From the sequence record NC_048048.2: DNA of 64,000 bases, one strand, 5' to 3'. Below are positions 161-53,451 of the stretch, piece by piece; the first letter of the stretch is position 1, and each line of letters opens with the position of its first letter. The notes under the pieces are model-generated. The model was not told the DNA's origin. It saw only the letters and a list, made by a program, of their open reading frames with translations, and made no database searches. Both the position numbers and the translations under genes were made by a program.

Positions 161-162
161 TC

Positions 163-32561: not shown

Positions 32562-32702
32562 ACCGGCGATCGAGGCGCAGCCGAGGAGACGGGATGGGAT
32601 GGGAAAGGATTCATGACCCGATGTCGCGTTTCTTGACGTGTGTCACGTGACGTGTCATGAAGGTTACCGAAGATGGTTAATGCGCCATCCAAGGACCACC
32701 CG

Positions 32703-38001: not shown

Positions 38002-40818
38002 GTGACCCTTAGTACCCTTAAGCCCCCCGTTTCGCCCTATCCCCACGAGGAGCGCGCCAAGCGTCGCGCCGGCGTGCGCCGCATGCGCAAGCTCGCCGAG
38101 GACATCCGCGACGATCACGTCCGGGGCCGGGACCAGGACCCCCAGCGCGCCACCGCCGCCACCGCCATCACCGGCGTGTCCGAGCCCCGGCACCAAGTCG
38201 CCGTGCTGGAGCAGATCGCCGACAAAATCCAGACCGAGCACCTGGACAAGCTCTATCCGCTGGCGCGCGACGACTTCTCGGCCTTCTGCGAGGTCATCAG
38301 CCCCGAGGAGCCGCCCGAAAGCCCCTGGCACATCTGGCTGACAAATTTCCTGCAAGAGGTCGAGCTTTCGCCCGATCTCAACAAGGTCGTGCTCAACGTG
38401 CCGCCCGGCCACGCCAAGCCCCTGCACGAGGACACCCTGGTGCTGATGGGCGATGGCGCCTATCGGCCGCTCAAGGACATCGCCGTCGGCGATACGGTCT
38501 GGACCCATGCCGGCCGCGCCCGCCCCGTCACCGCCGTCCACGAGCAGGGCAAGCTTTCCACCGTCGAGATCGTCACCGAGGCCGGCCGTATCGTGCGCGC
38601 CGCCCCCGACCACCCGTTCCTGGTCAAGCTGGGGACCAGGGACGATGGGACCCCGATCGCCGAGTGGATCAACGCCGGCGACCTGCGGCCGGGCATGCCC
38701 GTGGTGCTCTCGGCCCACAAGCCGCCGAGCATTGAGCGCCTGCGCTATGACGGCGACCACACCACGCCCGAGACCTACGACAAGCACCTGCGCCGGGCCG
38801 AGGCGCTGGGCTACATGGCGCTGGGCGGCGCCCTGCACTGGCAGAAGTCCAAGACCCAGGTCACCCCCTCGCCGGACTTTAGGCTGTCGACCCACAAGCG
38901 CGCGCTGATGAAGCACATCGTCAAGCTGGTCAAGACCGGCCTTGGCCATCACATCAGCGTCTGCAAGGTCGCCTCCCAGAACACCTTCGTCGCGCGCCTG
39001 GGCGTCAAGGGCTTTCGCGATCTCAACGCCGGCGACTGGTTCACCTACGAGCCCGAAAAGCGCCGCGTCCCGCCGGTCATCTTCACGTCGAGCAAGGACG
39101 AGATCGCCGCCTTTCTGGGCGCGGCCTTCTCCCTGCGCGGCGAGGTCATCCGCCGGCTGCGCGGCAAGAACCTGCGCCTCTACCATCGCTCGATGGACCT
39201 GCTGCTGGACGTGCAGAAGTTGTGTGCGACGCTGGGGGCCACAGGAAGCCTCGACAGGGGCGATCCTGATTTTGGCGGCCGACCCTGCCTGAACCTCGAC
39301 TTCGCCGCTGTGGAGGCCCTCCAGGCGGCCGGAGTGACCTTCGACGGCGAGACCGACATCGACCTCGTCAACCAGCCGCCCTTCACCATGCTGATCCCGC
39401 GTCCGAGCGACACCGACGCGGTCGTCTCGGTGCTGCCGGCCAAGAAGGCCCGCTGCCTGTGCCTGACCGTCGAGGAGGACCACAGCTTCACGGCCGAGAC
39501 CCTGGTGGTCAAGAACTCCACCTACGCCTCGCGCCTGTTCGTGGCGTGGCGCCTGGGCCGCGATCCCAACCAGCGCATCATCGGCGGCGGCCACAGCCAG
39601 AACTTCGTCGAAAACGAGTTCTCGGCCAAAATCCGCAACATCGTCGAGAGCCCCGAGTTCCAGCGCGTCTTCCCCGGCATCACCGTCGACCACAAGACCA
39701 ACGCCAAGCAGCAGTGGGCGATCGCCGGCTACAAGGGCCAGTACGTGGCGCGCGGCGTGGGCCAGGGCATCCACGGTTTCCGCGCCACCTTCATCTGCGT
39801 CGACGACCCCTACTCCAAGATCGAGGACGCCAACAGCCCCGTCCACCGCCGCAAGGTCGAGCAGTGGTTCGACGCCGATATCGGCTCTCGCGCCCTGCCC
39901 AACTGCAAGACCTTCCTCATCATGACCCGCTTCCATGGCGAGGATTTGACTAATCACCTGGAGGAGATGAATAAGGTCCTCCCCGACAATGCAAAGTGGA
40001 AGATCGTTACTGTTCCGGCGATCTGTTTTGATGAAGAGACTGATCTTCTAGGCCGCAAGATCGGGGAATTTTTGTGGGATTACTATCCGTTGTCCTACTT
40101 TGTTGACAAGAAGATTCAGTTTGGATTTTTGGGTTTCGCCCTCACCTACCAACAGGTGTCGTCTGCCGCAAATCCCGACAACATCGCCAGCAAGTTCAAC
40201 TTCTACGATTTTCTGCCCCACGAGTCGCCTGAAGCCAAGGCCCGCGCGCCGCTCGACCAGTTCGGTCGGCCGCAGATTAACGAGAGTGATTTTTACCGGC
40301 GCACCATCGTCTCGGTCGACACCGCCTCCAAGACCACCGAACGGGCCGACTACACCGTCGTCCAGGTCTGGCGCGAGGATTTCAAGGGCAAGCACTATCT
40401 CGTCCATCAGGATCGCCGGAAGGTTGAGTTCAACGATCTGATCTCGATGATCGAGGCGCCGGCCATCAAGTACCGGGCCGATCAAATCCTTGTCGAGGAC
40501 AAGGGCTCGGGCACCCAGTACCTCCAGAACCGGGGCTCGACCGACAACCAGAAGCGTCAGGCCCCCTGCCCGCTGGTGGCGGTCAATCCGGGCGTGGCCG
40601 GCAAGAGCTTCCGCTTCGATGGGGTCACGCCGATGATCGAGGCCGGCGATGTCTGGCTGCCCAAGGACGCCCCCTGGATCGAGCAGCTTCTGGTCGAGGT
40701 GGGCCAGTTCCCCGACAGCGCCCACGATGACCAAGTCGACGCCATGAGCCAGTACCTCAACCACGCCAAGAAGAACCGCACCCGTTACGGCAGCCGCAAG
40801 ATCACCAAGCACACCTGA
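38002..40818 (+). CDS. terL: terminase large subunit, intein-containing (start uncertain)
   Basis: Walker A VPPGHAK/ST split by intein; Walker B ICVDDP; IMTRFH; nuclease SVDTAS, VEDKGSG and HDDQVDAMSQ. Confidence 0.95.
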   Translation: MTLSTLKPPVSPYPHEERAKRRAGVRRMRKLAEDIRDDHVRGRDQDPQRATAATAITGVSEPRHQVAVLEQIADKIQTEHLDKLYPLARDDFSAFCEVISPEEPPESPWHIWLTNFLQEVELSPDLNKVVLNVPPGHAKPLHEDTLVLMGDGAYRPLKDIAVGDTVWTHAGRARPVTAVHEQGKLSTVEIVTEAGRIVRAAPDHPFLVKLGTRDDGTPIAEWINAGDLRPGMPVVLSAHKPPSIERLRYDGDHTTPETYDKHLRRAEALGYMALGGALHWQKSKTQVTPSPDFRLSTHKRALMKHIVKLVKTGLGHHISVCKVASQNTFVARLGVKGFRDLNAGDWFTYEPEKRRVPPVIFTSSKDEIAAFLGAAFSLRGEVIRRLRGKNLRLYHRSMDLLLDVQKLCATLGATGSLDRGDPDFGGRPCLNLDFAAVEALQAAGVTFDGETDIDLVNQPPFTMLIPRPSDTDAVVSVLPAKKARCLCLTVEEDHSFTAETLVVKNSTYASRLFVAWRLGRDPNQRIIGGGHSQNFVENEFSAKIRNIVESPEFQRVFPGITVDHKTNAKQQWAIAGYKGQYVARGVGQGIHGFRATFICVDDPYSKIEDANSPVHRRKVEQWFDADIGSRALPNCKTFLIMTRFHGEDLTNHLEEMNKVLPDNAKWKIVTVPAICFDEETDLLGRKIGEFLWDYYPLSYFVDKKIQFGFLGFALTYQQVSSAANPDNIASKFNFYDFLPHESPEAKARAPLDQFGRPQINESDFYRRTIVSVDTASKTTERADYTVVQVWREDFKGKHYLVHQDRRKVEFNDLISMIEAPAIKYRADQILVEDKGSGTQYLQNRGSTDNQKRQAPCPLVAVNPGVAGKSFRFDGVTPMIEAGDVWLPKDAPWIEQLLVEVGQFPDSAHDDQVDAMSQYLNHAKKNRTRYGSRKITKHT
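38419..39516 (+). mobile_element. 366-aa intein with degenerate LAGLIDADG domain
   Basis: block A PLHEDTLV, block B AAPDHPF, block F RCLCLTVEEDHSF, block G VVKN/S; block C LGYMALGG and block E FLGAAFSLRG. Confidence 0.9.
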
Positions 40819-41258
40819 TGACCACCCTGGCTTACAAGGACGGCGTCCTGGCCGCCGACACCCGCATCTGCGACGGCACCCTGATGCTGGGCGTCTTCAC
40901 CAAGATCAGGCGCATCGGCCCGGTCTTGACGGCCGGCTGCGGCAACGCCCAGGACGTGGCCAAGTTCAACGCCTGGGTCAGCAGCGGGATGGAGGGCGAG
41001 TTCAGTATGGGCGAAAGCGAGTGCTGGCTGATCGCCCCCGGCCAGCCTGTCCTGATCTACGAGAACGACACCTTCCTGCGCATCGACGCGCCGTTCTACG
41101 CCAGCGGCACGGGCGGCGAGATCGCCCGAGGCGCCATGGCGATGGGGGCCGACGCGGTCACGGCCGTGCGCCAAGCCATCCTCCACGACAGCGCCACAGG
41201 CCCGCCGATCGACGTCCTCTACCTGGACGGCCGCCCCGGCGAGCGGCTGGCGGCCTGA
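40818..41258 (+). CDS. HslV/proteasome-beta-like Ntn hydrolase
   Basis: MTTLAY...LAADT...TKI...AGCG...ASGTGGEIARGAM...D..TG. Confidence 0.8.
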   Translation: MTTLAYKDGVLAADTRICDGTLMLGVFTKIRRIGPVLTAGCGNAQDVAKFNAWVSSGMEGEFSMGESECWLIAPGQPVLIYENDTFLRIDAPFYASGTGGEIARGAMAMGADAVTAVRQAILHDSATGPPIDVLYLDGRPGERLAA

Positions 41259-41330
41259 TCCGCCCAAGACCACGATCGGCGACATCTTCAGACAGTCGCC
41301 GATCGTCGACTTTGCCCCCTGTGGGGCGCG

Positions 41331-41371
41331 TTAACCATGTTTGTTTACCCTCTTTGGCCCGTTAACCTTAA
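41331..41371. promoter_or_regulatory. CtrA-type half sites
   Basis: TTAACCAT at 41331 and TTAACCTTAA at 41362 in the intergenic gap. Confidence 0.5.
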
Positions 41372-41434
41372 TAAAATCCCTGGTAGTACCAAGTAGGACC
41401 GGCACTACCAGCGGTAATACCGGAGAAAACGCCC

Positions 41435-41998
41435 GTGTTTCGCTACATCGCTGCCCTTTTCGACCACATCGTCCACTACAAGCTCGCCCCCGCCCACCTG
41501 AAGGTGGAGAACCAGGGCGCCCTGGAGCGGCTCCAGGCGGCCGATCGCCAGATCGAGGCCGGCGTCTATGCCGGCAGCGACGTGCGCGGCACCCGCGCCT
41601 ACGCCTTCCACCACATCCCGCCGCGCGAGCGCCTGATCGCCGCCAACAAGGGCCGCGACGTCACCAGCCTCACCCCGCGCCGCGAGCGTCGCCTGTCGGT
41701 GGCCGGCAAGAAGCCCTGGGAGCCGCTGCTGGTCACCGAGCCGCCGCGTGATCCCGAGGAACTGGCGCGCGAGCGCGAGGATGAGGCCCGTGCCCTGCGC
41801 GACAGCGCCGAGCATCTGGCCAAGCGCGCGGCCACGCGTCTGGCGCGCCAGCGGATGCGCGAACGCTACGCGCCTTATCGCAGCGCGGGTCAGGAGGTGC
41901 TGAGCAACGTCGGCCTGGACGCCACCTGGGTGCGGGCTGGCTATCAGCAGGCCATCGACGACGCCCATCCGATCGCCGAGACCCCGGACGAAGTCTAG
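41435..41998 (+). CDS. hypothetical protein
   Basis: GGAGA SD before GTG. Confidence 0.75.
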   Translation: MFRYIAALFDHIVHYKLAPAHLKVENQGALERLQAADRQIEAGVYAGSDVRGTRAYAFHHIPPRERLIAANKGRDVTSLTPRRERRLSVAGKKPWEPLLVTEPPRDPEELAREREDEARALRDSAEHLAKRAATRLARQRMRERYAPYRSAGQEVLSNVGLDATWVRAGYQQAIDDAHPIAETPDEV

Positions 41999-42100
41999 GG
42001 ACCCTCGTCCCAACCGCTCGGGGACCCGGCCGGAAAAAGGCCAGGGACCCTGGCGGAAAAACCTCCAGGGACCCTGCGCCAGACGAGCCAGGGACCCTGG
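41996..42100. repeat. GGGACCC repeat cluster
   Basis: five GGGACCC, three as CCAGGGACCCTG (42041, 42065, 42088). Confidence 0.8.
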
Positions 42101-42138
42101 CCAAAATCGCTTCCAACCCAGACGGAAATTCGTAAGCC

Positions 42139-42285
42139 ATGCCCCACGACCTCCTCGCCCTCGTCTATTTCACCCTGGCCAGCCTCCTGGCGCTCGCCAT
42201 CCTCTTTGGCGAACTCGACTGGGATATCGACGGCCGCCGGGGCAGCCTCAAAGGCCCGCTCGCCCCGCCCGGTCCTAGTTCATAG
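42139..42285 (+). CDS. 48-aa TM peptide
   Basis: MPHDLLALVYFTLASLLALAILFG. Confidence 0.55.
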   Translation: MPHDLLALVYFTLASLLALAILFGELDWDIDGRRGSLKGPLAPPGPSS

Positions 42286-42922
42286 TTTTCGTGACAACAT
42301 TTGATTTCATTGGGCTTTTTGGCCTGCTGTCACGATTCAAAAGGTTTCACGCGTGCCCCGAGCCCTGCAAATCCACCCAAAATGGGCGATTTTGATCGAT
42401 CTCGGGCTCTGGCTGATCGTCAGGATCATCGCATTGGTCCACAATGCGAGGCCGGAGGCCGGTGCGCCACCCACCAAAGCGTGAGACATGTCAAGCCCCC
42501 TGGCTTGGCGTGTCATAGTTTGTCCGAAAGGTGACAGGGCGGGCGCAAAAGAAATCCGGTTGACTCCGCAAACCCAGGCCAGACTTGACGTTGCGCCATT
42601 CTCCGCAGGTCTTGCGGCGATTGCCCAGGCTATTCTCCGCACGTGTCCGCAAAACCGCCTATGTGACGCCCTGCTTGACACGGCGGGGGCGCTGTGACAC
42701 ACAAAAGGCTCGGGCGTGCGCTCGGATGGAAAGCCCCGCTGTCGGCTTCACGCCAAGGCCTGGGTGGACCACCAGCGCTAGACCTGCCCGCCGGCGCCCT
42801 CGACCCCATGCGATCGCCGGCGGGACCCCACCGCCTTGGCCTGCCACACCCGGCGAGGACCCAGGGCGAGAAACGCCCACCAGAGCCCGCCGCCCTGGTG
42901 GGCGTTTTGGTGTCCGGGCCTG

Positions 42923-43125
42923 GACTTGACGTCGGCCCATTTCGCCGCCGACTTGACGCCGGATCATTTGCCCGGCCGACTTGACGCCAGCGCATTTCCC
43001 CCAGACTTGACGCGAACGCATTTCGAATTTGACGCGAGCGCGTTTCCTTCCCAAATTTGACGCGAGTCCATTTCAAACTTGACTTGACGTCATTTCATTT
43101 CCTTGACCTGACGCCGTTCCGTTCC
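42923..43125. repeat. array of 8 TTGACG-N6-CATTT units
   Basis: hexamer at 42926, 42953, 42981, 43007, 43029, 43057, 43084 and (CTGACG) 43108. Confidence 0.9.
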
Positions 43126-43133
43126 GCCGGGCC

Positions 43134-43360
43134 TTAAGGTTAACGGCGGATTAACCATACGGCGAGTAAGGTTAATTTTCAAGGTTAACGGGTAGGATGA
43201 ACGAACGTGGTTAACGGGCCTTAAGGTTAAATCTTAAGGTTAACAGGCGTTAAGGTTAACGCTTAGGGTGAAAAATTAAGGTTAACGCGCCCGGCCGGAC
43301 CGCCCAGGCCCTACCGGCGCCGTTAAGGTTAACGCCAGGGGTCGAATCGTTAAGGTTAAC
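43134..43360. repeat. dense TTAAGGTTAA / CtrA-type cluster
   Basis: about ten AGGTTAA/TTAAGGTTAA copies, including TTAA-N7-TTAACCAT. Confidence 0.85.
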
Positions 43361-43364
43361 ACCC

Positions 43365-43481
43365 AAAAACAGCGAAAATCAGCAAAAATCGTCCAAAAAC
43401 AGTGAAAATCAGCGAAAAATAGCGCTTTTCAGCCTGAAAATCGCAAAAAATCCGTGTTTTGGCCCATTTTTGGGTCATTTT
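43365..43481. other. helically phased A/T tracts (intrinsic bend)
   Basis: A4-6 at 43365, 43375, 43384, 43395, 43405, 43415, 43437, 43445; T tracts at 43426, 43457, 43467, 43478. Confidence 0.8.
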
Positions 43482-43550
43482 CGCGCTCTGACCCGCTTCT
43501 GGGCCAGCCCGAACGGGCGCCGGCCGGGTCGTGATCCCCCGGCCGGTGGG

Positions 43551-43613
43551 TCAGTGGAGAATCCAGAGCAACAGCGCCAGAGCCGCCAGTGACCAGCCGT
43601 TCAGCAATTTCAG
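43551..43613 (-). CDS. 20-aa hydrophobic peptide (KLL...LLWxLH family), CTG start
   Basis: (L/M)KLLNGWSLAALALLLWILH*; GAGAGG SD; similar to 53876 and 57615. Confidence 0.5.
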   Translation of the reverse strand: MKLLNGWSLAALALLLWILH

Positions 43614-43756
43614 GTGTGCGCCTCTCTCGTCTGCCGTGGCCGCTCGCCACGCTTCCTTCATCGCATACAAGAAAACTGTTGCCAAGCCCCAAAGATCGCT
43701 TGACAGCATAAAAGCCCAATGCGACAAGGGGACATCCAAACGGGAGACACCCCCCA

Positions 43757-44329
43757 ATGACCACCGAAACCCTCGACCTCCTCTATCCGGTCCTGATGCT
43801 GGAGCAGAAGATTCCCCACCGCGAAGGCATGTTGCGGCTGGCCATCGTCCTGCGCGACTTCGGCCCCAAGGCGCCCCATCGCTACGTCACCCACCTGCGG
43901 GCTGAAAACCCCGTGCCGGGCTCTGACCACGCCTTCACCTACAGCTATGAGCATGGCACCTATTCGGCCGACCTGCGCCGCGCCCTGGCCGTCTATTTCG
44001 AGCGCGTCACCGAGCGGGTCATGACCGCCATGGTCGTGCTCCACGACCTGCCCGAGGTCGCGCCGCCGGCGCCGACCGTCACCGTGCCGCTCGAACTGGC
44101 CCAGACCGCCTATGGCCTGATCGATGACAACGAACTGGACCTCTCCAAGGCCTGCGGCAACGTCACCTTGGTCGAGGCCGCCATTACCGGTCTGGCCGCC
44201 GTCCTGGGACCGCGCCGCTACTTCCGCGATGTCGAGGAAGGCAACGCCAAGCTTCTGGAGGCCTTCGAAGCCCAGCAAGCCGCGCGTGACGCGGCCCTAG
44301 AAGCCGAATCCGAAGAGGAAGAGGCCTAA
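43757..44329 (+). CDS. cassette gene, hypothetical
   Basis: GGGAGACACCCC leader. Confidence 0.8.
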   Translation: MTTETLDLLYPVLMLEQKIPHREGMLRLAIVLRDFGPKAPHRYVTHLRAENPVPGSDHAFTYSYEHGTYSADLRRALAVYFERVTERVMTAMVVLHDLPEVAPPAPTVTVPLELAQTAYGLIDDNELDLSKACGNVTLVEAAITGLAAVLGPRRYFRDVEEGNAKLLEAFEAQQAARDAALEAESEEEEA

Positions 44330-44499
44330 AAAGCCCGCCCAGGCCTCCCCGGCCTGGGCGTGAGCCCTCCAGGGGCCGTTAAGGTTAACGCCAGGGGCCG
44401 GGACGTTAAGGTTAAGGCCGAAAATAGTGCGAGAAACCTGTTGACACGCATTGCGGCCCTATGCGAGAACAAGGCTCCACTTCATGAGGAGCGCCAAGC

Positions 44500-45126
44500 A
44501 TGGCCCTGCCCGATCACTTCCTGGTTTCCGTCGACGGCTCGCTCTATGACACGCGGGTGCAAGGCTGGAACCAAGCCGCGCCGCTGCGGATCAATTACCG
44601 GATCGTCAATCGCGACATCCACGGCATGAGCGAGGTCAAGGCCGCCTTGCGCTGCGGCGCCTTTACCGACATCGGCGGCTATCCGCTGTATTTCGTCACG
44701 CAGGACGGCCGCGCCCTGTCCTTCGACAGCGCCCGCAAGATGCTCTATCAGATCGCCGACGATTTCCAGCATGGCGCCTCGACCGGCTGGCGGATCACCG
44801 GCGCCCTCATCAACTACGAGGATCACGACCTCGTCTGCGATCACAGCGGCGAGAAGATTCCGGCCGCCTATGATCCGGTGCAATGGGCCGCAGGCTGCAA
44901 TGTCTCGGGCTTCATGCCCGACAGCGAGCCTTCCCACCATGCGACCTGGGAAGAGGCCAAGGAAGACTTGCGCGCCCAGGTCGAACTGGCGCGCGAGCCC
45001 TACGAGATCGGTTCGGACGAGGACGACGCCCTAGCCCGCGTCGCCCGCGCCCTGGAGGCCCTTAAGGAAGGCCAAGAGCTTAACATGGGCGCCATCGGCT
45101 ATCGCTGGTGGGTCGAACGCCTGTAA
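44500..45126 (+). CDS. cassette gene, hypothetical
   Basis: GAGGAG SD; YPLYFVTQDG...CDHSGEKIPAAY. Confidence 0.8.
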   Translation: MALPDHFLVSVDGSLYDTRVQGWNQAAPLRINYRIVNRDIHGMSEVKAALRCGAFTDIGGYPLYFVTQDGRALSFDSARKMLYQIADDFQHGASTGWRITGALINYEDHDLVCDHSGEKIPAAYDPVQWAAGCNVSGFMPDSEPSHHATWEEAKEDLRAQVELAREPYEIGSDEDDALARVARALEALKEGQELNMGAIGYRWWVERL

Positions 45127-45147
45127 ACCAAGGAAAGGACCCCTTCC

Positions 45148-45294
45148 ATGTTCATTCTCATCGTCGGCAATCCCAGCGACGGCTTCACTTATTACGGCCC
45201 CTTCGACGAGCATGACGACGCCGTCACCTATGCCGAGGCGACCGGCACCGAGGGCAACCCCTGGTGGGTCGCGCCCCTGGAAGCGGCGGACTAG
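45148..45294 (+). CDS. 48-aa hypothetical protein
   Basis: AAGGA SD; MFILIVGNPSDGFTYYGPF. Confidence 0.7.
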   Translation: MFILIVGNPSDGFTYYGPFDEHDDAVTYAEATGTEGNPWWVAPLEAAD

Positions 45295-45300
45295 CCCGTC

Positions 45301-45435
45301 ATGACCGCTCTCGAAAAGCGCGGCTACAAGGCCGCCCAGGCGGGCGTCAAGTGGTGGAACAACCCCCACCCCAGCGGCTCCCCGGCCGCCTATCAGTGGG
45401 ACAAGGGCCACACCCGCCACCGCCTCGGACGCTAG
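45301..45435 (+). CDS. 44-aa Rmf/CrpP-like protein
   Basis: KRGYKAAQAG...NPHPSGSPAAYQWDKG. Confidence 0.6.
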   Translation: MTALEKRGYKAAQAGVKWWNNPHPSGSPAAYQWDKGHTRHRLGR

Positions 45436-45614
45436 CCGAGCCCAGGCCTTCGCGCCTGGGCTTTGCCCGCCCCCTGGGCGTTAAGGTTAAGGCCGAAAAT
45501 AGTTCAAGAAACCTGTTGACACGCATCAGGCTCCCATGCGAGAACAGGATCAGACGAAACGACAAGACCACAAAGGAGGCCGCCATGAAGTAGCGACAAT
45601 CTGGAGCACAACTC

Positions 45615-46001
45615 ATGGAATTCTTCGTCCGCACCACGCTGGTCAGCATCGCCCGCCACTGGGAGGACGGCGCCGACGTGATCGCCACCTGCTATTGCGT
45701 CTGTGTCGAGTACCCGGACGGCGCCCGCTATGTCCACGACTATCAGCCGGTCGACCGCTATGTCAGCGCCGACGACGAAGGCGAGCCCATCTATCCCTGG
45801 CGGGACGGCGAGGCCATCAAGGCCAAGCTGGACGCCTTGCGCGATGAGATCGCCGCCCACGTCGCCGCTGGCGGGAGCCTCGATCCTGGCCACTGGTTCG
45901 AGGTCGATCCGCGCTACGGCTCCCCGGCCTATATGGGCCTGGACGCCTTCGGGTTCTTCCGGGCGCGCGAAAAGCAAGAGGCCGCCGAGCGCGGCGACTG
46001 A
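45615..46001 (+). CDS. cassette gene, hypothetical
   Basis: GGAG SD; ...DPRYGSPAY. Confidence 0.8.
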   Translation: MEFFVRTTLVSIARHWEDGADVIATCYCVCVEYPDGARYVHDYQPVDRYVSADDEGEPIYPWRDGEAIKAKLDALRDEIAAHVAAGGSLDPGHWFEVDPRYGSPAYMGLDAFGFFRAREKQEAAERGD

Positions 46002-46008
46002 CACCCAA

Positions 46009-46036
46009 AAGGCCCGCCCATCCGGCGGGCCTTTTT
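46009..46036 (+). terminator. intrinsic terminator
   Basis: AAGGCCCGCC-loop-GGCGGGCCTTTTT. Confidence 0.8.
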
Positions 46037-46055
46037 CCTTGACCACCGCCTGGGG

Positions 46056-46082
46056 TTAACCTTAAGGCCGCGTTAAGGTTAA
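46056..46082. promoter_or_regulatory. extended CtrA-type box (example; exact N7 copies also near 47122, 47797, 49537, 51660, 54325, 56380, 57734, 63014)
   Basis: TTAACC-TTAA-N7-TTAA-GGTTAA. Confidence 0.8.
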
Positions 46083-46183
46083 GCCCGCCCAGGCCCGTAA
46101 AAAGATGCAAGAAACCTGTTGACACGCATGGAAGGCCTATGCGAGAACAGGGCTCAACACCAACGCCAGCCGGGAGACACCCC

Positions 46184-46774
46184 ATGGCCCTCGTCACCGA
46201 ATCCTTTGTCGTCGATCTGGCCTGCGGGCGCGCCCTGACCAACGGCGAGCGCCGCATGGTCGCCGCCGTGATCGACTCGCTTCTCGACCCGCATTTCAAG
46301 TCGACCGCCTGGGTCAAGGGCGGCGACCATCGCGAGGCCGTCCACTACTGCGACCGCGTGACGCCCTACAGCCTGCACGGCGAGAACGCCAACGCCGCGC
46401 GCGTGCGCACCGAGGCCCTGACCACCCGCGACCATGACGCCCCCGTCCTGCTGTCGCTGTCGGTCGGCGACACCATCGGCGAAATCGCCCGCTTCTACAC
46501 CATCGCCGCCGCTGTCGAATATCTCGACGGCAACCCCGATATCGATCCGACCTCGCTGCACATGGGCGCCTACACCATTGACGCCCCGTTCGGCGTGGCC
46601 AATGACATCGAGGCTGACAAGCTCCTCTATGACCTGGGCTATCGCCTGCACGCCATGGCCGGCGGGTCCTGGACCTACAGCGATCCGCAGGGCCGCCTGT
46701 GGGACGGCGGCGGCAAGCGCGAAGCCGTGGTCATGATCGCTCTGAAGCAAGCCGCCGACGCTGAAGAGGCCTAA
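46184..46774 (+). CDS. cassette gene, hypothetical
   Basis: GGGAGACACCCC leader. Confidence 0.8.
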   Translation: MALVTESFVVDLACGRALTNGERRMVAAVIDSLLDPHFKSTAWVKGGDHREAVHYCDRVTPYSLHGENANAARVRTEALTTRDHDAPVLLSLSVGDTIGEIARFYTIAAAVEYLDGNPDIDPTSLHMGAYTIDAPFGVANDIEADKLLYDLGYRLHAMAGGSWTYSDPQGRLWDGGGKREAVVMIALKQAADAEEA

Positions 46775-46779
46775 GGCCC

Positions 46780-47103
46780 GTGAAGCGCCGTCACGCCCTC
46801 TTCCTGTCGGTGATCGCTTCGGCGCCCGACGTGGTGATCCTGCAAGCTCCGGCGCACTTCCTGCGCTGGAGCGACCACCGCAAGGCCATCCTGGCGTTCA
46901 TGCGCCAGACCTACGGCGTCAAGGCCGCCGACGTTCACGCCGTCGAAGGCGTCGCCGGCTATGCCGAACCCGACCCGACCGACGACCCCGCCGTCCTGGC
47001 GCGCTTTCAAGCCGCCTTCGCCGGGTCTGACAACTTCCCCAAGGTCGCCCTGGCGGCCTGGGACGGGCAGGCCTATCGGCTGGTCCGCCGGCCTCTGGCG
47101 TGA
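46780..47103 (+). CDS. hypothetical protein
   Basis: GTG start after upstream stop. Confidence 0.65.
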   Translation: MKRRHALFLSVIASAPDVVILQAPAHFLRWSDHRKAILAFMRQTYGVKAADVHAVEGVAGYAEPDPTDDPAVLARFQAAFAGSDNFPKVALAAWDGQAYRLVRRPLA

Positions 47104-47227
47104 GGCCGCCACCGCCCAGGCTTAACCTTAACGTGGCGTTAAGGTTAAGGCCGAAAATAGTTCAAGAAAGCTGTTGACAGCATAGGAGGCTTATGCGAGA
47201 AAGGCTCATCGAAACGGGAGACACCCC

Positions 47228-47743
47228 ATGGACGACACCTATCCGCCCCTGACCCCCGGCCAGCAAGCCGCCCTGGTCGCCTTCGCCGACCAGCATGGCG
47301 GCCTGGGCGAGGCCTGGAAAGAGGCCCTGAGCGACGCCTGGAGGACGTGCAGCGAGCCCGATGCGCTCAAGGCCGACCTGCGGACCATCCGCAACACCTA
47401 TGGCCCCTCCTGGCTCTATGACGAATACGCCTGGGGCTGGCGCCCGACCCTTCCCGACTGGGAGCGCGCCGGCCGCTGGACCGACACCCCGCCGCAGCCG
47501 ACGCCGGGCAAGGCTCGCTGGAGCGCCGCCTTCGACCCGCCGGCCATCGGCGACCGGGTGCGCGTGACCACCAACGGCCTGGGCTGGGCGCGGGTCACCG
47601 GCTACTTCGTCGAAGCCGACTGGCTGGGCGTGATTGTCAAGCTGGAGGCCCCGGCCGACTGGTATGTCAAACAGAACGGCGGCAACGTCCCCGGCCACAG
47701 CTTCGGGACCGAGATCGCCCTGACCGACCCCGCGACCGACTGA
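47228..47743 (+). CDS. cassette gene, Trp-rich hypothetical with SH3-like C-terminus
   Basis: conserved leader; PAIGDRVRVTTNGLGWARV. Confidence 0.8.
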   Translation: MDDTYPPLTPGQQAALVAFADQHGGLGEAWKEALSDAWRTCSEPDALKADLRTIRNTYGPSWLYDEYAWGWRPTLPDWERAGRWTDTPPQPTPGKARWSAAFDPPAIGDRVRVTTNGLGWARVTGYFVEADWLGVIVKLEAPADWYVKQNGGNVPGHSFGTEIALTDPATD

Positions 47744-47923
47744 CCTGGACGGCCCTGGCTGGGAGACCAGCCGGGGCGAGGCCTAACCCGGCGCGGTTAA
47801 CCTTAACCGCCCATTAAGGTTAACCGCCGGCGCCCTGGGGCGGGCGAAAGAAAATGCAAGAAAACTGTTGACACGCATCTGAGGGCTATGCGAGAAAGGG
47901 CCATCGAACAACGGAGGCCCCTC

Positions 47924-48766
47924 ATGGCCAAGCTATTCAGCGACCTTCAGGACCTTGCCAACTCGACCTATGTCGTGCGCATCGTCGACAATGGCGGCCA
48001 GAGCGCCGACCGCTACACGATCGTCACCGCCGATGGCGACTATTACGCCTACAGCGCCAATCCCGCCCATCCCCAAGGCGTGGGCCTGAGCGGCGAGGGC
48101 ATCGACCCGCAAGTGCTGGTCGACTGGGTGGAGCGCGGCGAAGCCGTCGACCTGACCATCGGCGAGCTACCCGAGGCCGCCGCCCGCTGTCTGCTGGCGT
48201 CGATCAACGCCAGCGTCGAGGACTTCCTGTCGGCTGTCGAGGACCCGACCAGCAACGCCGTGGCCCCGACCCGCGAAAAGGCGGAGATCAATGACGGCGT
48301 GATGGATTGCTTCGGCAAGGGCATCTATCGCGTGGGCGAGGGTTTCGCCGTGCGCATGGATGGCCTGGACGCGGGCGATGATCGCGGCCCCTTCATGAGC
48401 GCTGTCGAGGCGGTCAAGGCCACCCTCCCCGATGAATACGCCTGGGCTGGCGAGGAATACCTGTCGCCGCGCGACATGACCAAGATCACGCCCGAAGCCA
48501 AGCCGCTCGTTCTGGTCCACGCCCTGGAGGCCATTCGCGACTATGAATATCAGCGCGACAACCCCGGCTCGTTCTTCGACGGGCTGAACGAGGACGACAC
48601 TGACGCGGGCCTGGGCATCGTGCGCCGCACGCGCTACCTGTCCAAGGTCACCGATGATGCGACCATCGTCGGGCTGATCGGCGAGGCGCCGGCCTTCGCC
48701 CTGGCCCATGAATGTCTCGACCAACTGTGGACCCTGGCGCAAGAGCGGTGGGAGGCGGGCCAGTGA
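47924..48766 (+). CDS. cassette gene, hypothetical
   Basis: GGAGG SD; RIVDNGGQSADRYTIV. Confidence 0.8.
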   Translation: MAKLFSDLQDLANSTYVVRIVDNGGQSADRYTIVTADGDYYAYSANPAHPQGVGLSGEGIDPQVLVDWVERGEAVDLTIGELPEAAARCLLASINASVEDFLSAVEDPTSNAVAPTREKAEINDGVMDCFGKGIYRVGEGFAVRMDGLDAGDDRGPFMSAVEAVKATLPDEYAWAGEEYLSPRDMTKITPEAKPLVLVHALEAIRDYEYQRDNPGSFFDGLNEDDTDAGLGIVRRTRYLSKVTDDATIVGLIGEAPAFALAHECLDQLWTLAQERWEAGQ

Positions 48767-48966
48767 GCGCCCGCGAACGCCGCGCCCTCTCCGAACTGCT
48801 GGCCCTGTTCCACGCGGTCAACAGCGGCCACGTCAAGGGCCGCAACCCCTACGCCTTCCCGGCCGTCAAGCTCGCCAACGAGGTATTGACGGGCGACCCG
48901 CTGGACGGGGTTTCCACGTCGCCGAAGCCCTGGACCGGCATCGCGAGGCGGACGGCAAGGCCTTGA
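48763..48966 (+). CDS. hypothetical protein
   Basis: GGAGG SD, GTGA overlap. Confidence 0.65.
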   Translation: MSARERRALSELLALFHAVNSGHVKGRNPYAFPAVKLANEVLTGDPLDGVSTSPKPWTGIARRTARP

Positions 48967-49070
48967 TTTTCGAGGTCGGCGGTTGCCCGGACGGCTGCTT
49001 GCTGTCCTACAGCGGCGCGGTTCCGCGCTGCGTCAACTGCGACACCGAATATCCCGAAGAAAACGGTTGA
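48963..49070 (+). CDS. 35-aa Cys-rich peptide
   Basis: TTGA overlap; GCPDGC...RCVNC. Confidence 0.45.
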   Translation: MIFEVGGCPDGCLLSYSGAVPRCVNCDTEYPEENG

Positions 49071-49121
49071 CAGCATAAGGGAGCTATGCGAGAAAGGGTC
49101 ATCAACGGAGACACCCCGCCC

Positions 49122-49262
49122 ATGTGGACCGAAAAGACCTTCAAGACCCGCGCCGCCAAGGAGGCCTGGATCGCCCGCAATGAAGACCGCTATCAGATCG
49201 TCGAGATCGTGGTCTGCAACGCCTACGGCGTGACCTACAAGCCCCTCCGACGCGTCTACTAG
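49122..49262 (+). CDS. 46-aa cassette gene
   Basis: conserved leader; MWTEKTFKTRAAKEAW. Confidence 0.75.
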   Translation: MWTEKTFKTRAAKEAWIARNEDRYQIVEIVVCNAYGVTYKPLRRVY

Positions 49263-49272
49263 GAGACCTCGC

Positions 49273-49464
49273 ATGATCCCCGACTCGGTCCGTAACCCGC
49301 AAGATCATTGGACCCCCATCGCCACCCGCGCCAAGGCTGACGCCCTGGCCTATCGCTACAACCAAGATGACGCCGGCCCCGGCCTCTACGAGGTCCACGA
49401 AAAGGGCGAAAGCTTCGCCATCGCCTACTATGACGAAGACGGCGCCTTCTGCGGCTACGTCTAA
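49273..49464 (+). CDS. 63-aa hypothetical protein
   Basis: AGGAG SD. Confidence 0.75.
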   Translation: MIPDSVRNPQDHWTPIATRAKADALAYRYNQDDAGPGLYEVHEKGESFAIAYYDEDGAFCGYV

Positions 49465-49481
49465 CCCGCTCCTGTCAACTT

Positions 49482-49518
49482 GAAGGCCGGCGCCGCTCTC
49501 CTGGCGCCGGCCTTTTTC
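49482..49518 (+). terminator. intrinsic terminator
   Basis: AAGGCCGGCGCC-loop-GGCGCCGGCCTTTTT. Confidence 0.85.
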
Positions 49519-49673
49519 TTGCCCGCCGCCTGGGTCTTAACCTTAAGGCGAGATTAAGGTTAACGCCGCCTTAAGGTTAACCGGTGCCCCGCATCCCGCC
49601 CGGATGCAAAAAACCTGTTGACACGCATTTCGACCCTATGCGAGAAAGGCGACGAACACGGGAGACACCCCTT

Positions 49674-50672
49674 ATGACCACGACCATTCCCGGCGCCGAG
49701 CATACGATGATCGGACAAGCCGCCTATCGCTCGACCAAGCGCCCCGACCAAGTGCGCGAGATGGCCTATGGCGCGTTCCCGGCCGCGACGTCGGACTCGC
49801 CCTTCGCCGTCAAGCCGGCCTGTGGCAAGGTCCCGAGCGCGCGCGTGCTGGAGGACTTCGACCCCGCCGACGTCTTCACGACCAGAGCCAATGATCGCGG
49901 CGGCTTCTATGCCTCCGCCAACTTCGGCGGCTCTGAGGTGTCGTGGATCAGCATCGCCGGCTATGGCGACACCGAGGAGGCCGCCCGCGCCGATCTCATG
50001 GCCCGGTTCATCGCCGACCGCGACGGCAAGGGCAAATTTGGCCCTCACCATCCCCTGGTCGGCTATGACTGGGGCTATAAGCTCGCCCCGTTCTGGGACA
50101 TGCTGGAGCGCGAGGCCGCCATTCGCCAGCCCTTCAAGCGCCAGCTTTACCTGGGCAAGCTGAAGTCCGGCCGCCCTAATCCCAAGGGCTTTGACGTGTT
50201 CGTCGATGTCGAATGGACCGGCGTGCGCCTGTCGCTGTCGGGCGTCATCGGCCCCAAGGCCAATGGCAACGCCTGGGACGGCGCAGGCCAGATCGTCGGC
50301 AGTCTCAAGCGCAAGGACTTTCTGGAGTTCGCCCCGTCCTGGCATTATGGATCGGCCCTTGACGGTCTGGTCCAGGCCTGGACCCGCTGGCACCTGAACG
50401 ACCTGCGCGCCGGCACGCTTCGGCAGGAAGACCACCTGCGCGGCTATGAGGCCAAGCGCAACATTGAGCAGGCCAAGGCCGCCGGCGCCCATTCTCTCGA
50501 CGCCACCCGCGCCGAACTGGCGCGCGTCCATATGGAGCCCGACACCTGGGAGCGCCACAACGGCCGGCCCTATAGCTACGGCTCCGCATGGCTTCGCGAG
50601 GAGGTCCCCACCTACGTTCTCGACTTCCTGCGCAATCTCCCCGCCCCCACCAAAATCAGCCCCTGGAGGTAA
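49674..50672 (+). CDS. cassette gene, hypothetical multidomain
   Basis: conserved leader; WTRWHLNDLRAG...YSYGSAWLREEVP. Confidence 0.8.
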   Translation: MTTTIPGAEHTMIGQAAYRSTKRPDQVREMAYGAFPAATSDSPFAVKPACGKVPSARVLEDFDPADVFTTRANDRGGFYASANFGGSEVSWISIAGYGDTEEAARADLMARFIADRDGKGKFGPHHPLVGYDWGYKLAPFWDMLEREAAIRQPFKRQLYLGKLKSGRPNPKGFDVFVDVEWTGVRLSLSGVIGPKANGNAWDGAGQIVGSLKRKDFLEFAPSWHYGSALDGLVQAWTRWHLNDLRAGTLRQEDHLRGYEAKRNIEQAKAAGAHSLDATRAELARVHMEPDTWERHNGRPYSYGSAWLREEVPTYVLDFLRNLPAPTKISPWR

Positions 50673-50679
50673 CCCGCCC

Positions 50680-51114
50680 ATGGCCATCAACACCGCCGGC
50701 CTCGTCGGCAAGCTCAAGGAAGCCCTCGCCGCCGCCCCCAACCTGACCCTATGGGCCAAGGAACGCGGCCTCTTCCATCAGAACGTTTCGGCCGCCGCGC
50801 GCGGCGACACCGTGCCGCAAGAAAGCATCGCCAAGGCCCTGGGCTTCCGACGCGTCCACGTCCAGGCCTATCTGGCGCCGGGCGAAGCCCTGCCGCTCCT
50901 GCCGCCCGGCTGGGAGGAGGTGCTTCCCGGTTCGGCGACCCCGGTCGACTGGAAGCCCCGCGACAAGGCCGCCGCCCCCGCCCCGCGCCGGGTCGGTTCG
51001 CCCGACCAGATGGCCAAGGCCCGCGACGCGCGCCGGCCGCGTTCCGCGCCGGTCCAGCCCCCGGCCCAAACCGCCGGCAAGCCTCGCCGCAAGAAAGTGC
51101 AAGAAACCGGTTGA
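50680..51114 (+). CDS. XRE/Cro-type HTH protein
   Basis: NLTLWAKERGLFHQNVSAAARGDTVPQESIAKALGF. Confidence 0.7.
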   Translation: MAINTAGLVGKLKEALAAAPNLTLWAKERGLFHQNVSAAARGDTVPQESIAKALGFRRVHVQAYLAPGEALPLLPPGWEEVLPGSATPVDWKPRDKAAAPAPRRVGSPDQMAKARDARRPRSAPVQPPAQTAGKPRRKKVQETG

Positions 51115-51164
51115 CAGCATAAGGCGGCTATGCGAGAAAGGCTCATCACTTCTGGAGCAAGCCC

Positions 51165-51374
51165 ATGGCCGCCTTCATCTGCACCGCCGATCTCAACGCC
51201 CTGGTCGAGGACATCGCCTATGACGTGGAGATGGAAGACCGCGCCGCCGAGGAACTCGACGGCCTGGACTTTGGCGACCGCTGTTACTACGGCGACCGCG
51301 CTTACCATGGCCAGCTTGAGCTTGCCCGGATCATCGAGACGGCCGTCGCCGCTCATCCCATCCTGTACGCCTAG
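51165..51374 (+). CDS. acidic 69-aa cassette gene
   Basis: GGAG SD downstream of promoter. Confidence 0.75.
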   Translation: MAAFICTADLNALVEDIAYDVEMEDRAAEELDGLDFGDRCYYGDRAYHGQLELARIIETAVAAHPILYA

Positions 51375-51390
51375 CAGAGGAGGCGCCGCT

Positions 51391-51603
51391 TTGCCACGCT
51401 ACCGCACCGACTACAGCGAAGACGACGGAAAAACCGTCATCATCGAGGAAGGCCTGACGAGGACGCAGGCCATGCAAAAGGCCGCGATCCTGTCGCGCAA
51501 GCACGGGACCGCCTACGCCGTCGCCTCCGACGACAAGGGCCGCGACACCGGCCAAAGGGTCTATGCTGACGGCCGGTTCAGCTACCAAGACGACAAGTTC
51601 TAA
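51391..51603 (+). CDS. 70-aa hypothetical protein
   Basis: AGGAGG SD before TTG. Confidence 0.7.
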   Translation: MPRYRTDYSEDDGKTVIIEEGLTRTQAMQKAAILSRKHGTAYAVASDDKGRDTGQRVYADGRFSYQDDKF

Positions 51604-51606
51604 GGC

Positions 51607-51634
51607 AAGAGGCCCGGAGCGATCCGGGCCTTTT
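51607..51634 (+). terminator. intrinsic terminator
   Basis: AGGCCCGG-loop-CCGGGCCTTTT. Confidence 0.8.
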
Positions 51635-51779
51635 GTCTGTCCCCCGCCCGGCGATAACCTTAACGCCGCGTTAAGGTTAACCCCCTGGGACGGGGGGCGC
51701 CGCCGCAAAAACTGCAAGAAAACTGTTGACACGCATTTCGACCCTATGCGAGAAAGGCGCATCAACCACGGAGGACAAC

Positions 51780-52511
51780 ATGTCCACGCACCCGCTGATC
51801 GCCGCCGCCCTGGCCAATCTTCGCGAAGGCCCGGCCATGGTCGCCGGCCCCGACCACGTCACCAAGGTCACGTCCTACGAACTGACCCGCGCGGTCATGT
51901 TCAAGGCCGCCGACCAGATCGAACGGGCTCTGAGCGATTTCCCCGCCCCGCCCGCCTGCCTGGGCGCCTTCCTGATGACCGAGTTCGACCGCCTGGGCGA
52001 CAACTGGGGCGCCCTGGGCGACGCCATCACCGAAGGCGAGGCCCTGGCCAATGCTGAAACCGTCCTGGCGTGGTACTTCAACGCCACCCGTGACGACGGC
52101 GACCCGGACGGCTACACGCTCAAACTCGCTGGCGCCCTGCCCAACGACGCCGAGGCCGCCCGCATCCGCCGCGACTACGCCGCCGCCCTGGAGGCGCAAG
52201 AGCAGGCCAAGGCCGCCGAGGCTCGCGCCTTCGCCGACCGTCACGCCGCCCTAGGTTCGGCCGAAGCCGTCGCCGACCTCCTGGGCTCGCTGTTCGACAC
52301 GCCGCGCACCGCCGCCGAGGCCCTGGGCTACAGCTTCCATTTCGTCCCGGTGATCGGCGGCGAGATCGAGGGCGAACGCGCCTGGATCGGCGAGGACAAG
52401 GCCGGCGAGCGCGTCCATGGCGACTACGCCAGCGCCGACCAAGCCGCCCGCGCCGCCCTCATCTACCACGTGCGCGCCAACCAAGCCGCCCAAATCGTCA
52501 AGGACGCCTGA
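51780..52511 (+). CDS. cassette gene, Ala-rich hypothetical
   Basis: GGAGG SD. Confidence 0.8.
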
Positions 52512-52513
52512 CC

Positions 52514-53140
52514 ATGACCGCCGCCGCATCCCTCTTCGAACAAGCCCAGATCGAGGCCGCTCAAGCCGCCATCGACGCCAACACCGCGCGCGTTGGGCTG
52601 GAGACCGAGGACGCCACGCCCGGAACCGACCTTTTCCACCTGCTGGGCTCGCTGCTGACCTGGGCCGACGCCTGGGCCGTGGACTTCGACGACATCCTGT
52701 CTCAGGTCCGCGAACCGGTGAACCTCTCCAAGACCGTGACCCGCTTTGATCCGGCCACCTATGGCCAAGACCAGCGGCTTGCGGCCATCCGCGCCAATCT
52801 CGACCAGCGCAACACCCCTTCCGTTCCGGTCCTGACCCGCGACGAGGCCGAAACCGAGGCCATGCGCGATCTCGCCGCCGTGGTCGGCAAGGTGATCAAG
52901 GTCCACGATATCACCGGCTATTTCGGCGAGACGGGCCAAGAGGACTTGCGCCCCCACGACGGCGCGCCGGCCTTTTCGGTGATCGTCCTGCCGTCCGACC
53001 GGGACGACGTGATCTACTGGAATGACGAGCATCTGGACGTTCGGTGGAACGTCACCCCCGCGCCGGGCGAAACCCGCCTCTACGAACTGCGCTCGCTCTG
53101 GGTGTTCGGGCGCGGCTATGTCATCGAAGGCGAGGGCTGA
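52514..53140 (+). CDS. hypothetical two-domain protein
   Basis: coupled ORF; DLFHLLGSLLTWAD. Confidence 0.75.
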   Translation: MTAAASLFEQAQIEAAQAAIDANTARVGLETEDATPGTDLFHLLGSLLTWADAWAVDFDDILSQVREPVNLSKTVTRFDPATYGQDQRLAAIRANLDQRNTPSVPVLTRDEAETEAMRDLAAVVGKVIKVHDITGYFGETGQEDLRPHDGAPAFSVIVLPSDRDDVIYWNDEHLDVRWNVTPAPGETRLYELRSLWVFGRGYVIEGEG

Positions 53141-53142
53141 TC

Positions 53143-53451
53143 ATGGCCATGCCCCTGGGCTTGCGGACCACCGCCACCAGCTACGCCATTGACGTGGACG
53201 ATGACCAGTTTCTGGCCATGATCCAGGCCGAAGGCTACAAGGGCGGTGATTTCGAGCCGTCCCTGTTCGACAAGCTGCAAAAGACCCCCGCCCGCGACAT
53301 CGAATATAACGGCCACTTCGGCGCGTCGGTCTATTTCACCCTCACCGAGGAAGACGACACCCCCGCCCTACGCGCCGAGCTTGGCCGGATGATCGCCGAA
53401 CACCTAACCCTCTGCGTCGCCCACATGGCGACCTACGACAAGGACGCCTGA
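53143..53451 (+). CDS. hypothetical protein
   Basis: coupled ORF. Confidence 0.75.
   Translation: MAMPLGLRTTATSYAIDVDDDQFLAMIQAEGYKGGDFEPSLFDKLQKTPARDIEYNGHFGASVYFTLTEEDDTPALRAELGRMIAEHLTLCVAHMATYDKDA

Follow-up and report, generated by a model that had tools for sequence, protein, structure and literature searches.

The phiCbK-like phages are classic tools for the study of the Caulobacter cell cycle, and both their replication origin and the cis-acting elements by which their episomes persist are unmapped. Genomes of the Dolichocephalovirinae have been reported to persist as replicating episomes from an origin that was postulated and whose location was not identified (Mohammadi and Ely, 2025, PMC12195562), and how the phage genome survives “lytic deferment” has been raised as a question (Mascolo et al., 2022, PMC9437464). 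Caulobacter phage CcrSC (genus Bertelyvirus; NC_048048.2, 317,489 bp) contains in its final 64,000 bp, hereafter the window, a run of direct repeats of the form TTGACG-N6-C(A/G)TTT, termed array A, of which no description was found in the studies of Gill (2012, PMC3556154), Nielsen (2017, on Lacusarx, PMC5648845), Mascolo et al. (2022) or Mohammadi and Ely (2025). What is such an array for? Comparison across phages argues that array A is very probably a selected array of protein-binding iterons and not a set of promoters, which corrects the tempting misreading of TTGACG repeats as necessarily parts of promoters. It also pins down a single non-coding module of 1.5 kb, conserved from Caulobacter phages to phages of Sphingobium and Erythrobacter, and brings the origin question within reach of direct tests that need one cloned fragment and a few candidate proteins.

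Array A and its locus

Window positions, used here unless stated otherwise, equal record positions minus 253,489. The right terminal repeat of CcrSC, annotated as 23,946 bp long, begins at 40,055 within terL (38002-40818), and array A lies 2.87 kb inside it, with two copies per packaged genome (record positions 2872-3065 and 296415-296608). Units matching TTGACG-N6-CATTT start at 42926, 42953, 42981, 43007 and 43057, all on the + strand, and the unit at 43029 (+) reads TTGACG-N6-CGTTT. Positions 43079 and 43084 (+) belong to a compound unit, TTGACTTGACGTCATTTCATTT, in which both halves are doubled 5 nt apart, giving two registers each with its own N6, and a degenerate unit follows at 43103 (+; TTGACC-N6-CGTTC). 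All share a single orientation at a start-to-start spacing of 19-28 bp, and the left half occurs as seven exact copies of TTGACG plus TTGACT and TTGACC. An earlier, sequence-only reading of this DNA had counted eight units at 22-28 bp, which was accurate as far as it went; it missed the degeneracy of the last unit and overlooked an outlier at 42585.

The tandem motif reported in that reading is real, since TTGACGNNNNNNCATTT, with at most one mismatch allowed, has 10 matches in the window (9 of them at the array locus), against an expectation of 0.51 and a maximum of 3 in 100 shuffles. Over the whole 317,489-bp genome the motif is confined to the array locus, once per terminal repeat, and no other cluster of TTGAC or TGACG words in the CcrSC genome comes near array A. 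In the non-redundant part of the genome, Tandem Repeats Finder detected no short-period array stronger than array A, and the only arrays of at least three copies and a period of at least 9 are array A, two neighbours in the same gap and one repeat inside an open reading frame (ORF) homologous to conserved structural genes; that ORF repeat aside, the gap is the sole repeat-rich locus in the non-redundant 293 kb. In arrays of clustered regularly interspaced short palindromic repeats (CRISPR), a constant repeat of 24-48 bp alternates with unique spacers that are about as long; here only 11 nt, divided over two blocks, are constant, between variable parts of 6 nt and 5-11 nt, and the judgement that the array is not CRISPR-like stands. 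A search of bacterial genome contigs (596 Gb) for two adjacent units gave at least 120 single matches in unrelated taxa, by our estimate about the level of chance, and no array in Caulobacter, and a scan of IMG/VR recovered known phages only, plus four unrelated AT-rich or coding repeats.

As the sequence-only reading had stated, the array sits in non-coding DNA, a 1.47-kb gap (42285-43757) between annotated genes. The elements in and around it follow one another as a terminator, array A, a second array (B), an AT-rich region (C) and the first early promoter:

42585 to 42601, + strand: isolated extra unit, TTGACGTTGCGCCATTC, 340 bp upstream of array A and kept in CcrBL9 at position 1753
42871 to 42907, + strand: intrinsic terminator with a 16-bp stem and a T-run, ending 16 nt ahead of unit 1
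42923 to 43125, + strand: array A, eight to nine direct copies of (G)AC-TTGACG-N6-C(A/G)TTT-C, with the compound unit at 43079-43100 and the degenerate last unit at 43103-43119
43134 to 43360, + strand: array B, nine same-sense units of the TTAAGGTTAAC type, six exact and three with one or two mismatches
43363 to 43484: region C, six A-tracts in phase at intervals of about 10 bp (43365-43419) and, after them, three T-tracts that are likewise phased (43457-43481)
43700 to 43756, + strand: first of the stereotyped early promoters, TTGACAGCAT..CAATGCGACAAGG, with the leader of the first early gene, whose ATG is at 43757

Conservation of the array

Conservation in relatives, which the sequence-only reading had proposed as a check, extends across genera. 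The same module occupies the same place in CcrBL9 (2094-2286), C1 and its kin (1944-2194), CcrPW of the genus Colossusvirus (1428-1575), phiCbK (1777-1908), Karma, CcrBL10 and the Brevundimonas jumbo phages Domovoi (at least 15 units) and Papperlapapp. The order is constant, with terL followed by a terminator or gene end, array A and an array of TTAAGGTTAAC/TTAACCAT (CtrA-type) units, after which most phages have phased A-tracts and the first early promoter; in phiCbK, an annotated terminator (1745-1774) leads straight into the first unit (1777). Identity between CcrSC and CcrBL9 is 97% for the two blocks of the unit (95/98 positions), 72% for the N6 and 91% for the linkers (Fisher p = 0.0015). 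With the core conserved at 97% and the N6 at 72%, both blocks are under purifying selection and the spacer is not. Neutral, satellite-like expansion was considered and is excluded by this block-specific conservation across genera.

The way in which the units are packed defines their limits. In the phages of about 220 kb (e.g., phiCbK) and in Domovoi they stand head to tail with a 16-bp period, so that the TT at the end of CGTTT also begins the following TTGACG. The units of Bertelyvirus are set apart by linkers of 5-11 nt, which never fall within the N6; the functional unit is therefore TTGACG-N6-CATTT and not CATTT-TTGACG. In most of the examined phages of Caulobacter and Brevundimonas, the array ends with the double-register compound unit. 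The genomes of phiCbK, CcrBL10, Domovoi and Papperlapapp have the pattern in such arrays only and always on the terL strand, and a reversed-pattern control gave 0-1 matches in these four. Domovoi and Papperlapapp possess three arrays each. The main one adjoins terL and has the B and C elements; the secondary ones, in intergenic gaps 12-31 kb deeper in the early region, immediately follow the end of a gene and precede the CtrA-boxed promoter of an ordinary early cassette by about 300 bp:

Domovoi (ON529855.1): arrays at 12141, 30146-30373 and 352005-352089
Papperlapapp (ON529860.1): arrays at 56968-57052, 69816 and 87319-87530

The secondary Brevundimonas arrays use a 36-bp compound unit, CTTGACCTGACGCCGTTTCGATTTGACG....

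More distant phages separate the histories of the two halves. The TerL proteins of Lacusarx (Sphingobium) and of XM05 and EliS-L02 (Erythrobacter) are only 34-36% identical to that of CcrSC, and downstream of terL these phages have GGGACC repeats, an array of the form hexamer-N6-CATTTT, TTAAGGTTAAC/TTAACCAT units and an early promoter. The hexamer is ATCGAG or ATCGTC in Lacusarx (8-10 units), ATGGAT in XM05 and ATCGAG or ATGGAG in EliS-L02, while the early promoters of all three retain TTGAC(G/C). Judged from these comparisons, the right half is ancient and the left half lineage-specific, and the left half has not been kept as a -35 element, because the outgroup arrays replace TTGACG while the outgroup promoters keep TTGAC.

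The array thus bears a clear signature of a co-evolving DNA-binding protein, and from it we infer protein binding. One sequence-specific protein would occupy the tandem, same-sense sites on double-stranded DNA, contacting two successive major grooves at TTGACG and CATTT, whose centres are about 11 bp apart. The simplest account would be a co-evolving protein with two reading heads, or a head-to-tail dimer. Since the left half-site varies with phage lineage, the binder is most likely phage-encoded; a host factor differing between Caulobacteraceae and Sphingomonadales may also play this part. The suggestion in the sequence-only reading of iterons for a phage protein is in its general form borne out by this pattern of conservation; the proteins that it named, terminase or a multi-helix-turn-helix protein, found no support, and a different repeat, GGGACC, fits the genome termini better.

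Promoter-like appearance and transcription

The appeal of a promoter reading is easily understood. The -35 consensus of the Caulobacter host sigma-73 is reportedly TTGACGS, and the left half in the Caulobacter and Brevundimonas phages, TTGACG(C/G/T), equals it. The sequence-only reading had taken the units as -35 elements without -10 elements and proposed an array for loading or sequestering RNA polymerase. Several observations speak against this. The second block, CATTT, stands at a fixed N6 and is as conserved as TTGACG, and no contact of RNA polymerase explains it; the outgroup arrays have ATCGAG or ATGGAT in place of TTGACG, and the promoters of the same phages do not change with them. A scan of the + strand of the array with an E. 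coli-type consensus found no -10 element after any unit, and the Caulobacter -10 sequence GCTANAWC is matched at best at 3-4 of its 7 informative positions behind every unit.

Transcription data are available from a relative of CcrSC. Four RNA-seq runs of 2023 hold 47% of the sampled words of the Karma locus, indicating a close relative, presumably phiCbK-infected cells. What was placed on Karma positions 1-6000 is assembled contigs and not reads, so that a hole in coverage alone proves nothing. In all four runs, the upstream contig stops at 1724-1766, at the terminator, and the next one starts at 2190-2237, at the first early promoter, which leaves about 430 bp (Karma 1767-2189, arrays A and B) uncovered between flanks with a depth of 114-270. 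The end points of the contigs vary between runs, which looks like coverage fading at the ends of transcripts rather than a break of the assembly at the repeats. The region of array A appears to be transcriptionally silent.

A possible origin of replication

With its 17-bp direct repeats, host-regulator sites and phased A-tracts, the locus has the anatomy of an origin, and from this, together with the proteins considered below, we infer both a likely binder and a function. That array A provides the iterons of a composite region serving as the phage replication origin is the likeliest of the functions considered, although on sequence evidence we would stop somewhat short of calling it probable. 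The 1.47-kb gap is in any case an obvious candidate, by its sequence, for the origin postulated for these episomes. Iterons are recognized as at least three direct repeats of some 17-22 bp whose core is conserved and whose spacing is regular, and array A has eight to nine units of 17 bp. It would be the first element of a composite control region, insulated by a terminator and made up of iterons, CtrA-type sites and phased A-tract/AT-rich DNA. Region C, 240 bp from array A, has a GC content of 36-40% compared with a genome mean of 64%, counts among the most AT-rich stretches of the genome and, at a scale of 100 bp, among its least stable ones, and is intrinsically bent, easily melted DNA. Array B holds one canonical CtrA box, TTAA-N7-TTAA (43140-43154), and a CtrA half-site, TTAACCAT (43151); binding of CtrA in electrophoretic mobility shift assays, and regulation, have been demonstrated at such boxes in the terminal repeats of phiCbK (Mascolo et al., 2022, PMC9437464).

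Candidate partners were sought by comparing all CcrSC ORFs with the phiCbK, XM05 and Lacusarx genomes and annotating those that are shared. The DNA-related core comprises TerS, TerL, a RuvC-like resolvase, a small tyrosine recombinase, a T5-A1-like “DNA transfer protein,” a family-A DNA polymerase, RecD-like and SNF2 helicases, a RecE-like exonuclease and a protein of 1234 amino acids (genome 157395-161099) common to all four phages. The PHROG matches of this last protein are to families of DNA polymerase/primase, DNA primase and DNA helicase, its nearest Atlas clusters have RepB_primase, DUF5906 (superfamily 3, SF3, helicase), VapE-like and Prim-Pol domains, and PF19263, PF06048 and PF05272 are domains of its more distant homologues. 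An AlphaFold model of its last 450 residues (predicted local distance difference test, pLDDT, 85.9) aligns with monkeypox virus E5 (Z 12.3) and a PriRep1-dsDNA entry (Z 12.1, model residues 55-450), as well as with the African swine fever virus PrimPol, vaccinia D5 and the SaPI5 primase-helicase (Z about 12). On these matches and models, the protein is of the primase/SF3-helicase class. The last 100 residues, modelled alone (pLDDT 88.6), form three successive helices and then a three-stranded beta-wing, with Foldseek matches that are weak (E at least 0.2) and mostly to winged-helix proteins (Z-alpha, PadR, Fur/Zur, MarR, Cdt1, forkhead, ORC). The C-terminal domain is accordingly predicted from the model to be winged-helix-like, a candidate reader of the iterons. 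Homologues of the protein in C1 and CcrPW are annotated as “PE-PGRS family protein,” which looks like a mis-annotation.

Another member of this core, the homologue of the T5 A1 protein, has 630 amino acids (genome 126852-128744; phrog_1745, 1e-178) and also occurs in phiCbK, XM05 and Lacusarx. Its N-terminal 145 or so residues fall outside the phrog_1745 profile, and a TyrR-like helix-turn-helix has been described in the N-terminal part of the phiCbK homologue (Gill, 2012, PMC3556154).

Under an origin reading, the iterons would be the loading site of the 1234-residue primase/SF3-helicase, an initiator of the self-loading type. Melting would take place in the bent AT-rich stretch, and CtrA of the host, bound at the neighbouring sites, could act as a gate that ties firing to the cell cycle. 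The presence of CtrA-type sites beside AT-rich DNA suggests such gating by analogy with the host and in the light of the work on CtrA and these phages (PMC9437464). The complete scheme, in which the primase-helicase reads the iterons and CtrA~P on the adjoining dozen sites blocks or licenses firing as at the host origin, is unlikely as a whole. If true, it would offer a molecular basis for the “lytic deferment” and episomal pseudolysogeny of phiCbK-like phages, and the lineage-specific left half-site would be a determinant of replicon specificity or incompatibility among co-infecting phages.

Iteron arrays in the control regions of phages and plasmids are already known as a kind of element. 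Those of F (RepE), RK2 (TrfA), P1 (oriR/incA), lambda (ori) and P4 (ori/crr) likewise consist of tandem direct repeats of 17-22 bp with a bipartite core and a free spacer, at a spacing of about two helical turns, next to an AT-rich or bent neighbour. Several of these replicons also have extra iteron clusters, such as P4 crr and P1 incA, which the secondary Brevundimonas arrays resemble. CcrSC differs from them in having no Rep_3 homologue, no DnaA boxes in the gap and no initiator gene adjacent to the array. What is unusual in array A is its combination with CtrA-type sites, its fixed right and lineage-specific left half, and the double-register compound unit that closes it. The Reps of Staphylococcus aureus pathogenicity islands (SaPIs) use a C-terminal winged helix to bind 6-12 iterons around an AT-rich centre, upon which the helicase loads itself (PMC9371898). 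SaPI origins are thus alike in their number of short iterons, their AT-rich region and an initiator that is an SF3 (primase-)helicase with a C-terminal winged helix, the PriRep1-dsDNA and SaPI5 entries being those with which the C-terminal 450 residues of the CcrSC protein align at Z about 12. On the other hand, SaPI iterons measure 5-6 nt, occur in both orientations on either flank of the AT-rich centre and lie immediately downstream of rep, whereas the CcrSC units are 17-bp, bipartite, of one sense, on one side of the AT-rich DNA and some 154 kb from the helicase gene. The Caulobacter origin Cori also has CtrA-type sites next to an AT-rich region, but it contains DnaA boxes and five full TTAA-N7-TTAA sites, as opposed to the single full site, many TTAAGGTTAAC units and unrelated A iterons of CcrSC.

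A number of observations weigh against an origin at this place. The arrays have no DnaA box within one mismatch of either consensus, and the gap has no DnaA, W-box or integration host factor consensus; no Rep_3-type initiator is found in the genome; and the helicase gene, besides being distant, has no iteron set beside it. The iterons are unidirectional and about 240 bp off on one side, while those of SaPI and lambda origins are adjacent to or flank the AT-rich DNA. The AT-richness of region C ranks only about third to eighth in the genome, other AT-rich gaps exist at genome positions 24.0-24.2 kb and 285.2-285.8 kb, and GC skew, which follows transcription and gene strand, gives no origin signal. 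The winged-helix assignment rests on topology and on Foldseek matches of the weak kind given above, and the secondary Brevundimonas arrays, upstream of ordinary early cassettes without B or C elements, fit regulation equally well.

The two most AT-rich stretches of the genome are positions 24030-24190, just outside the left terminal repeat, where a AAAAATTTTTTATAAAAAATTT palindrome comes right after the repeat boundary, and window positions 31700-32700, a gene-free gap of 1 kb that contains tandem repeats of 15 and 22 bp; each of the two is a possible alternative origin or control region. An AT-rich spot upstream of the primase-helicase gene was also considered as an origin and rejected, being a divergent promoter gap without iterons.

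Alternative functions of the array

Among the other functions that such an array might have, control of transcription ranks first and is still rather unlikely. The units would then be operators, or upstream activating or insulator sites, for a phage or host factor that acts on the early promoters or on read-through from terL, the RNA polymerase sink discussed above being a special case. Each array indeed immediately follows a terminator or gene end and shares its orientation with a CtrA-regulated early promoter downstream of it, the two further arrays of Domovoi and of Papperlapapp precede ordinary early cassettes, the left half in the Caulobacter and Brevundimonas phages equals what is reportedly the -35 consensus of sigma-73, and the units resemble the 5′ half of the cassette promoter, TTGACAcGCAT. 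However, only one of the roughly 18 CcrSC cassettes has an array, at 580 bp from the nearest promoter, and eight to fifteen sites are far above typical operator numbers. A left half that is not -35-like in the outgroups, where the promoters are, also disagrees with such a role, as do the lack of a -10 element behind any unit and the fact that none of the phiCbK RNA contigs begins in the array. A packaging signal, whose units would bind TerS and recruit TerL to cut at the left terminus or help to generate the terminal repeat, is quite unlikely. It would suit the position of the array, which always occupies the first sizeable non-coding stretch downstream of terS-terL, at 1.4-2.9 kb from the left terminus, and TerS belongs to the core and has an N-terminal helix-turn-helix (phrog_11494, 1.4e-40). 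The recognition arrays of other phages (lambda cosB R sites, SPP1 pacL/pacR, P1 pac hexamers) likewise combine repeated short motifs with bent DNA near terS/terL. Yet pac and cos recognition sites, where known, are no more than a few hundred base pairs from the cut, whereas array A is kilobases away, at a distance from the precise cut that varies from 2872 bp in CcrSC to 1777 in phiCbK and 1428 in CcrPW; the Brevundimonas phages carry three arrays per genome, and the repeat that tracks the termini, with arrays nearer the end, is GGGACC.

A centromere-like or anchoring site, at which an adaptor protein would partition or tether the circularised episomal genome in pseudolysogens, is very unlikely. 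In size and number, the tandem direct repeats are like those of parC-type centromeres, and the several arrays per Brevundimonas phage genome recall the scattered centromeres of N15. Episomal carriage is reported for the subfamily (PMC12195562), but a six-frame search of the whole genome returned no ParB_N or ParA/CbiA homologue at E<=1 (ParM/ParR not searched), and no candidate partner gene adjoins the array. Highly improbable, and proposed by analogy only with the T5 injection stop, is a signal for DNA entry: if the right repeat entered first, the array would be located at the inner end of the first 21 kb and could pause or hand over transfer. The T5 signal is described as palindromes and mixed repeats and not as a regular bipartite array, no two-step transfer is known for phiCbK-like phages, and the A1 homologue is encoded in the replication module and not in the terminal repeat. 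In favour of such a signal are the T5-like long terminal repeats and the core A1 homologue itself (phrog_1745; Gill, 2012, PMC3556154), and the left terminus has been proposed as the start of packaging (Gill, 2012), in which case the right end would exit first. The description of this DNA as first-injected in the sequence-only reading is uncertain: a packaging start at the left terminus would make the right repeat the first to enter and put the array about 21 kb in.

Three further candidates were rejected. Chi sites are short and contiguous and not bipartite at a fixed spacing, which disfavours a Chi-like protective array. A mimic of Type I restriction sites would be self-harmful and leaves the tandem layout unexplained. 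Arm-type sites for the core tyrosine recombinase would be expected with a core-type inverted repeat, and none was seen; in this 242-residue protein, Pfam matches the catalytic domain only.

Other features of the terminal repeat

Five GGGACC(C) repeats with a 23-bp period lie at 41998-42096, just after gp003, and a single AGGGACCCAAGGCC occurs at 63956-63968, 45 bp inside the boundary of the right terminal repeat. phiCbK has the same word at an equal distance from its boundary; written for both phages, the word is GGGACCCAA(A)GGCC. The left end of CcrPW begins with GGGGACCC, and similar GGGACC arrays follow terL in Lacusarx, XM05 and EliS-L02. The GGGACC repeat is a candidate terminase or terminus signal.

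The TTAAGGTTAAC word of array B has 40 sites in the window (41361 to 63041), every one of them inside the terminal repeat. Outside the gap, these are mostly inverted pairs that make up TTAA-N7-TTAA CtrA boxes ahead of cassette promoters, and so many sites could also titrate CtrA. The promoter at 43700 is the first of about 18 stereotyped early promoters in CcrSC. The early cassette promoters (about 18 sites, 44441-63548) have in common CTGTTGAC(A/T)-(C)GCAT-N6-8-CCTATGCGAGAAAGG, a consensus with an inverted repeat, GCAT..ATGC, between the -35 and -10 regions.

The genes neighbouring array A encode no recognisable DNA-binding domain. Only one gene near the arrays, encoding a protein of 208 amino acids (44500-45126, + strand), is conserved beyond the genus: its homologues in CcrBL9, C1, CcrPW, Domovoi and Papperlapapp lie a short way beyond the arrays, and Lacusarx has a similarly annotated gene. 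Its annotation as “DNA ligase” looks doubtful, since the protein has no ligase (or DNA-binding) Pfam domain and apparently two domains; its sole match is phrog_18452.

Rfam has no match in window positions 41000-45000. Between a TTGACA-type promoter-like site and the terminator that precedes array A, about 210 nt (42700-42912, + strand) without an Rfam match fold into four hairpins (minimum free energy -112 kcal/mol, z = -3.9). This stretch, which is conserved in CcrBL9, may be a small structured RNA.

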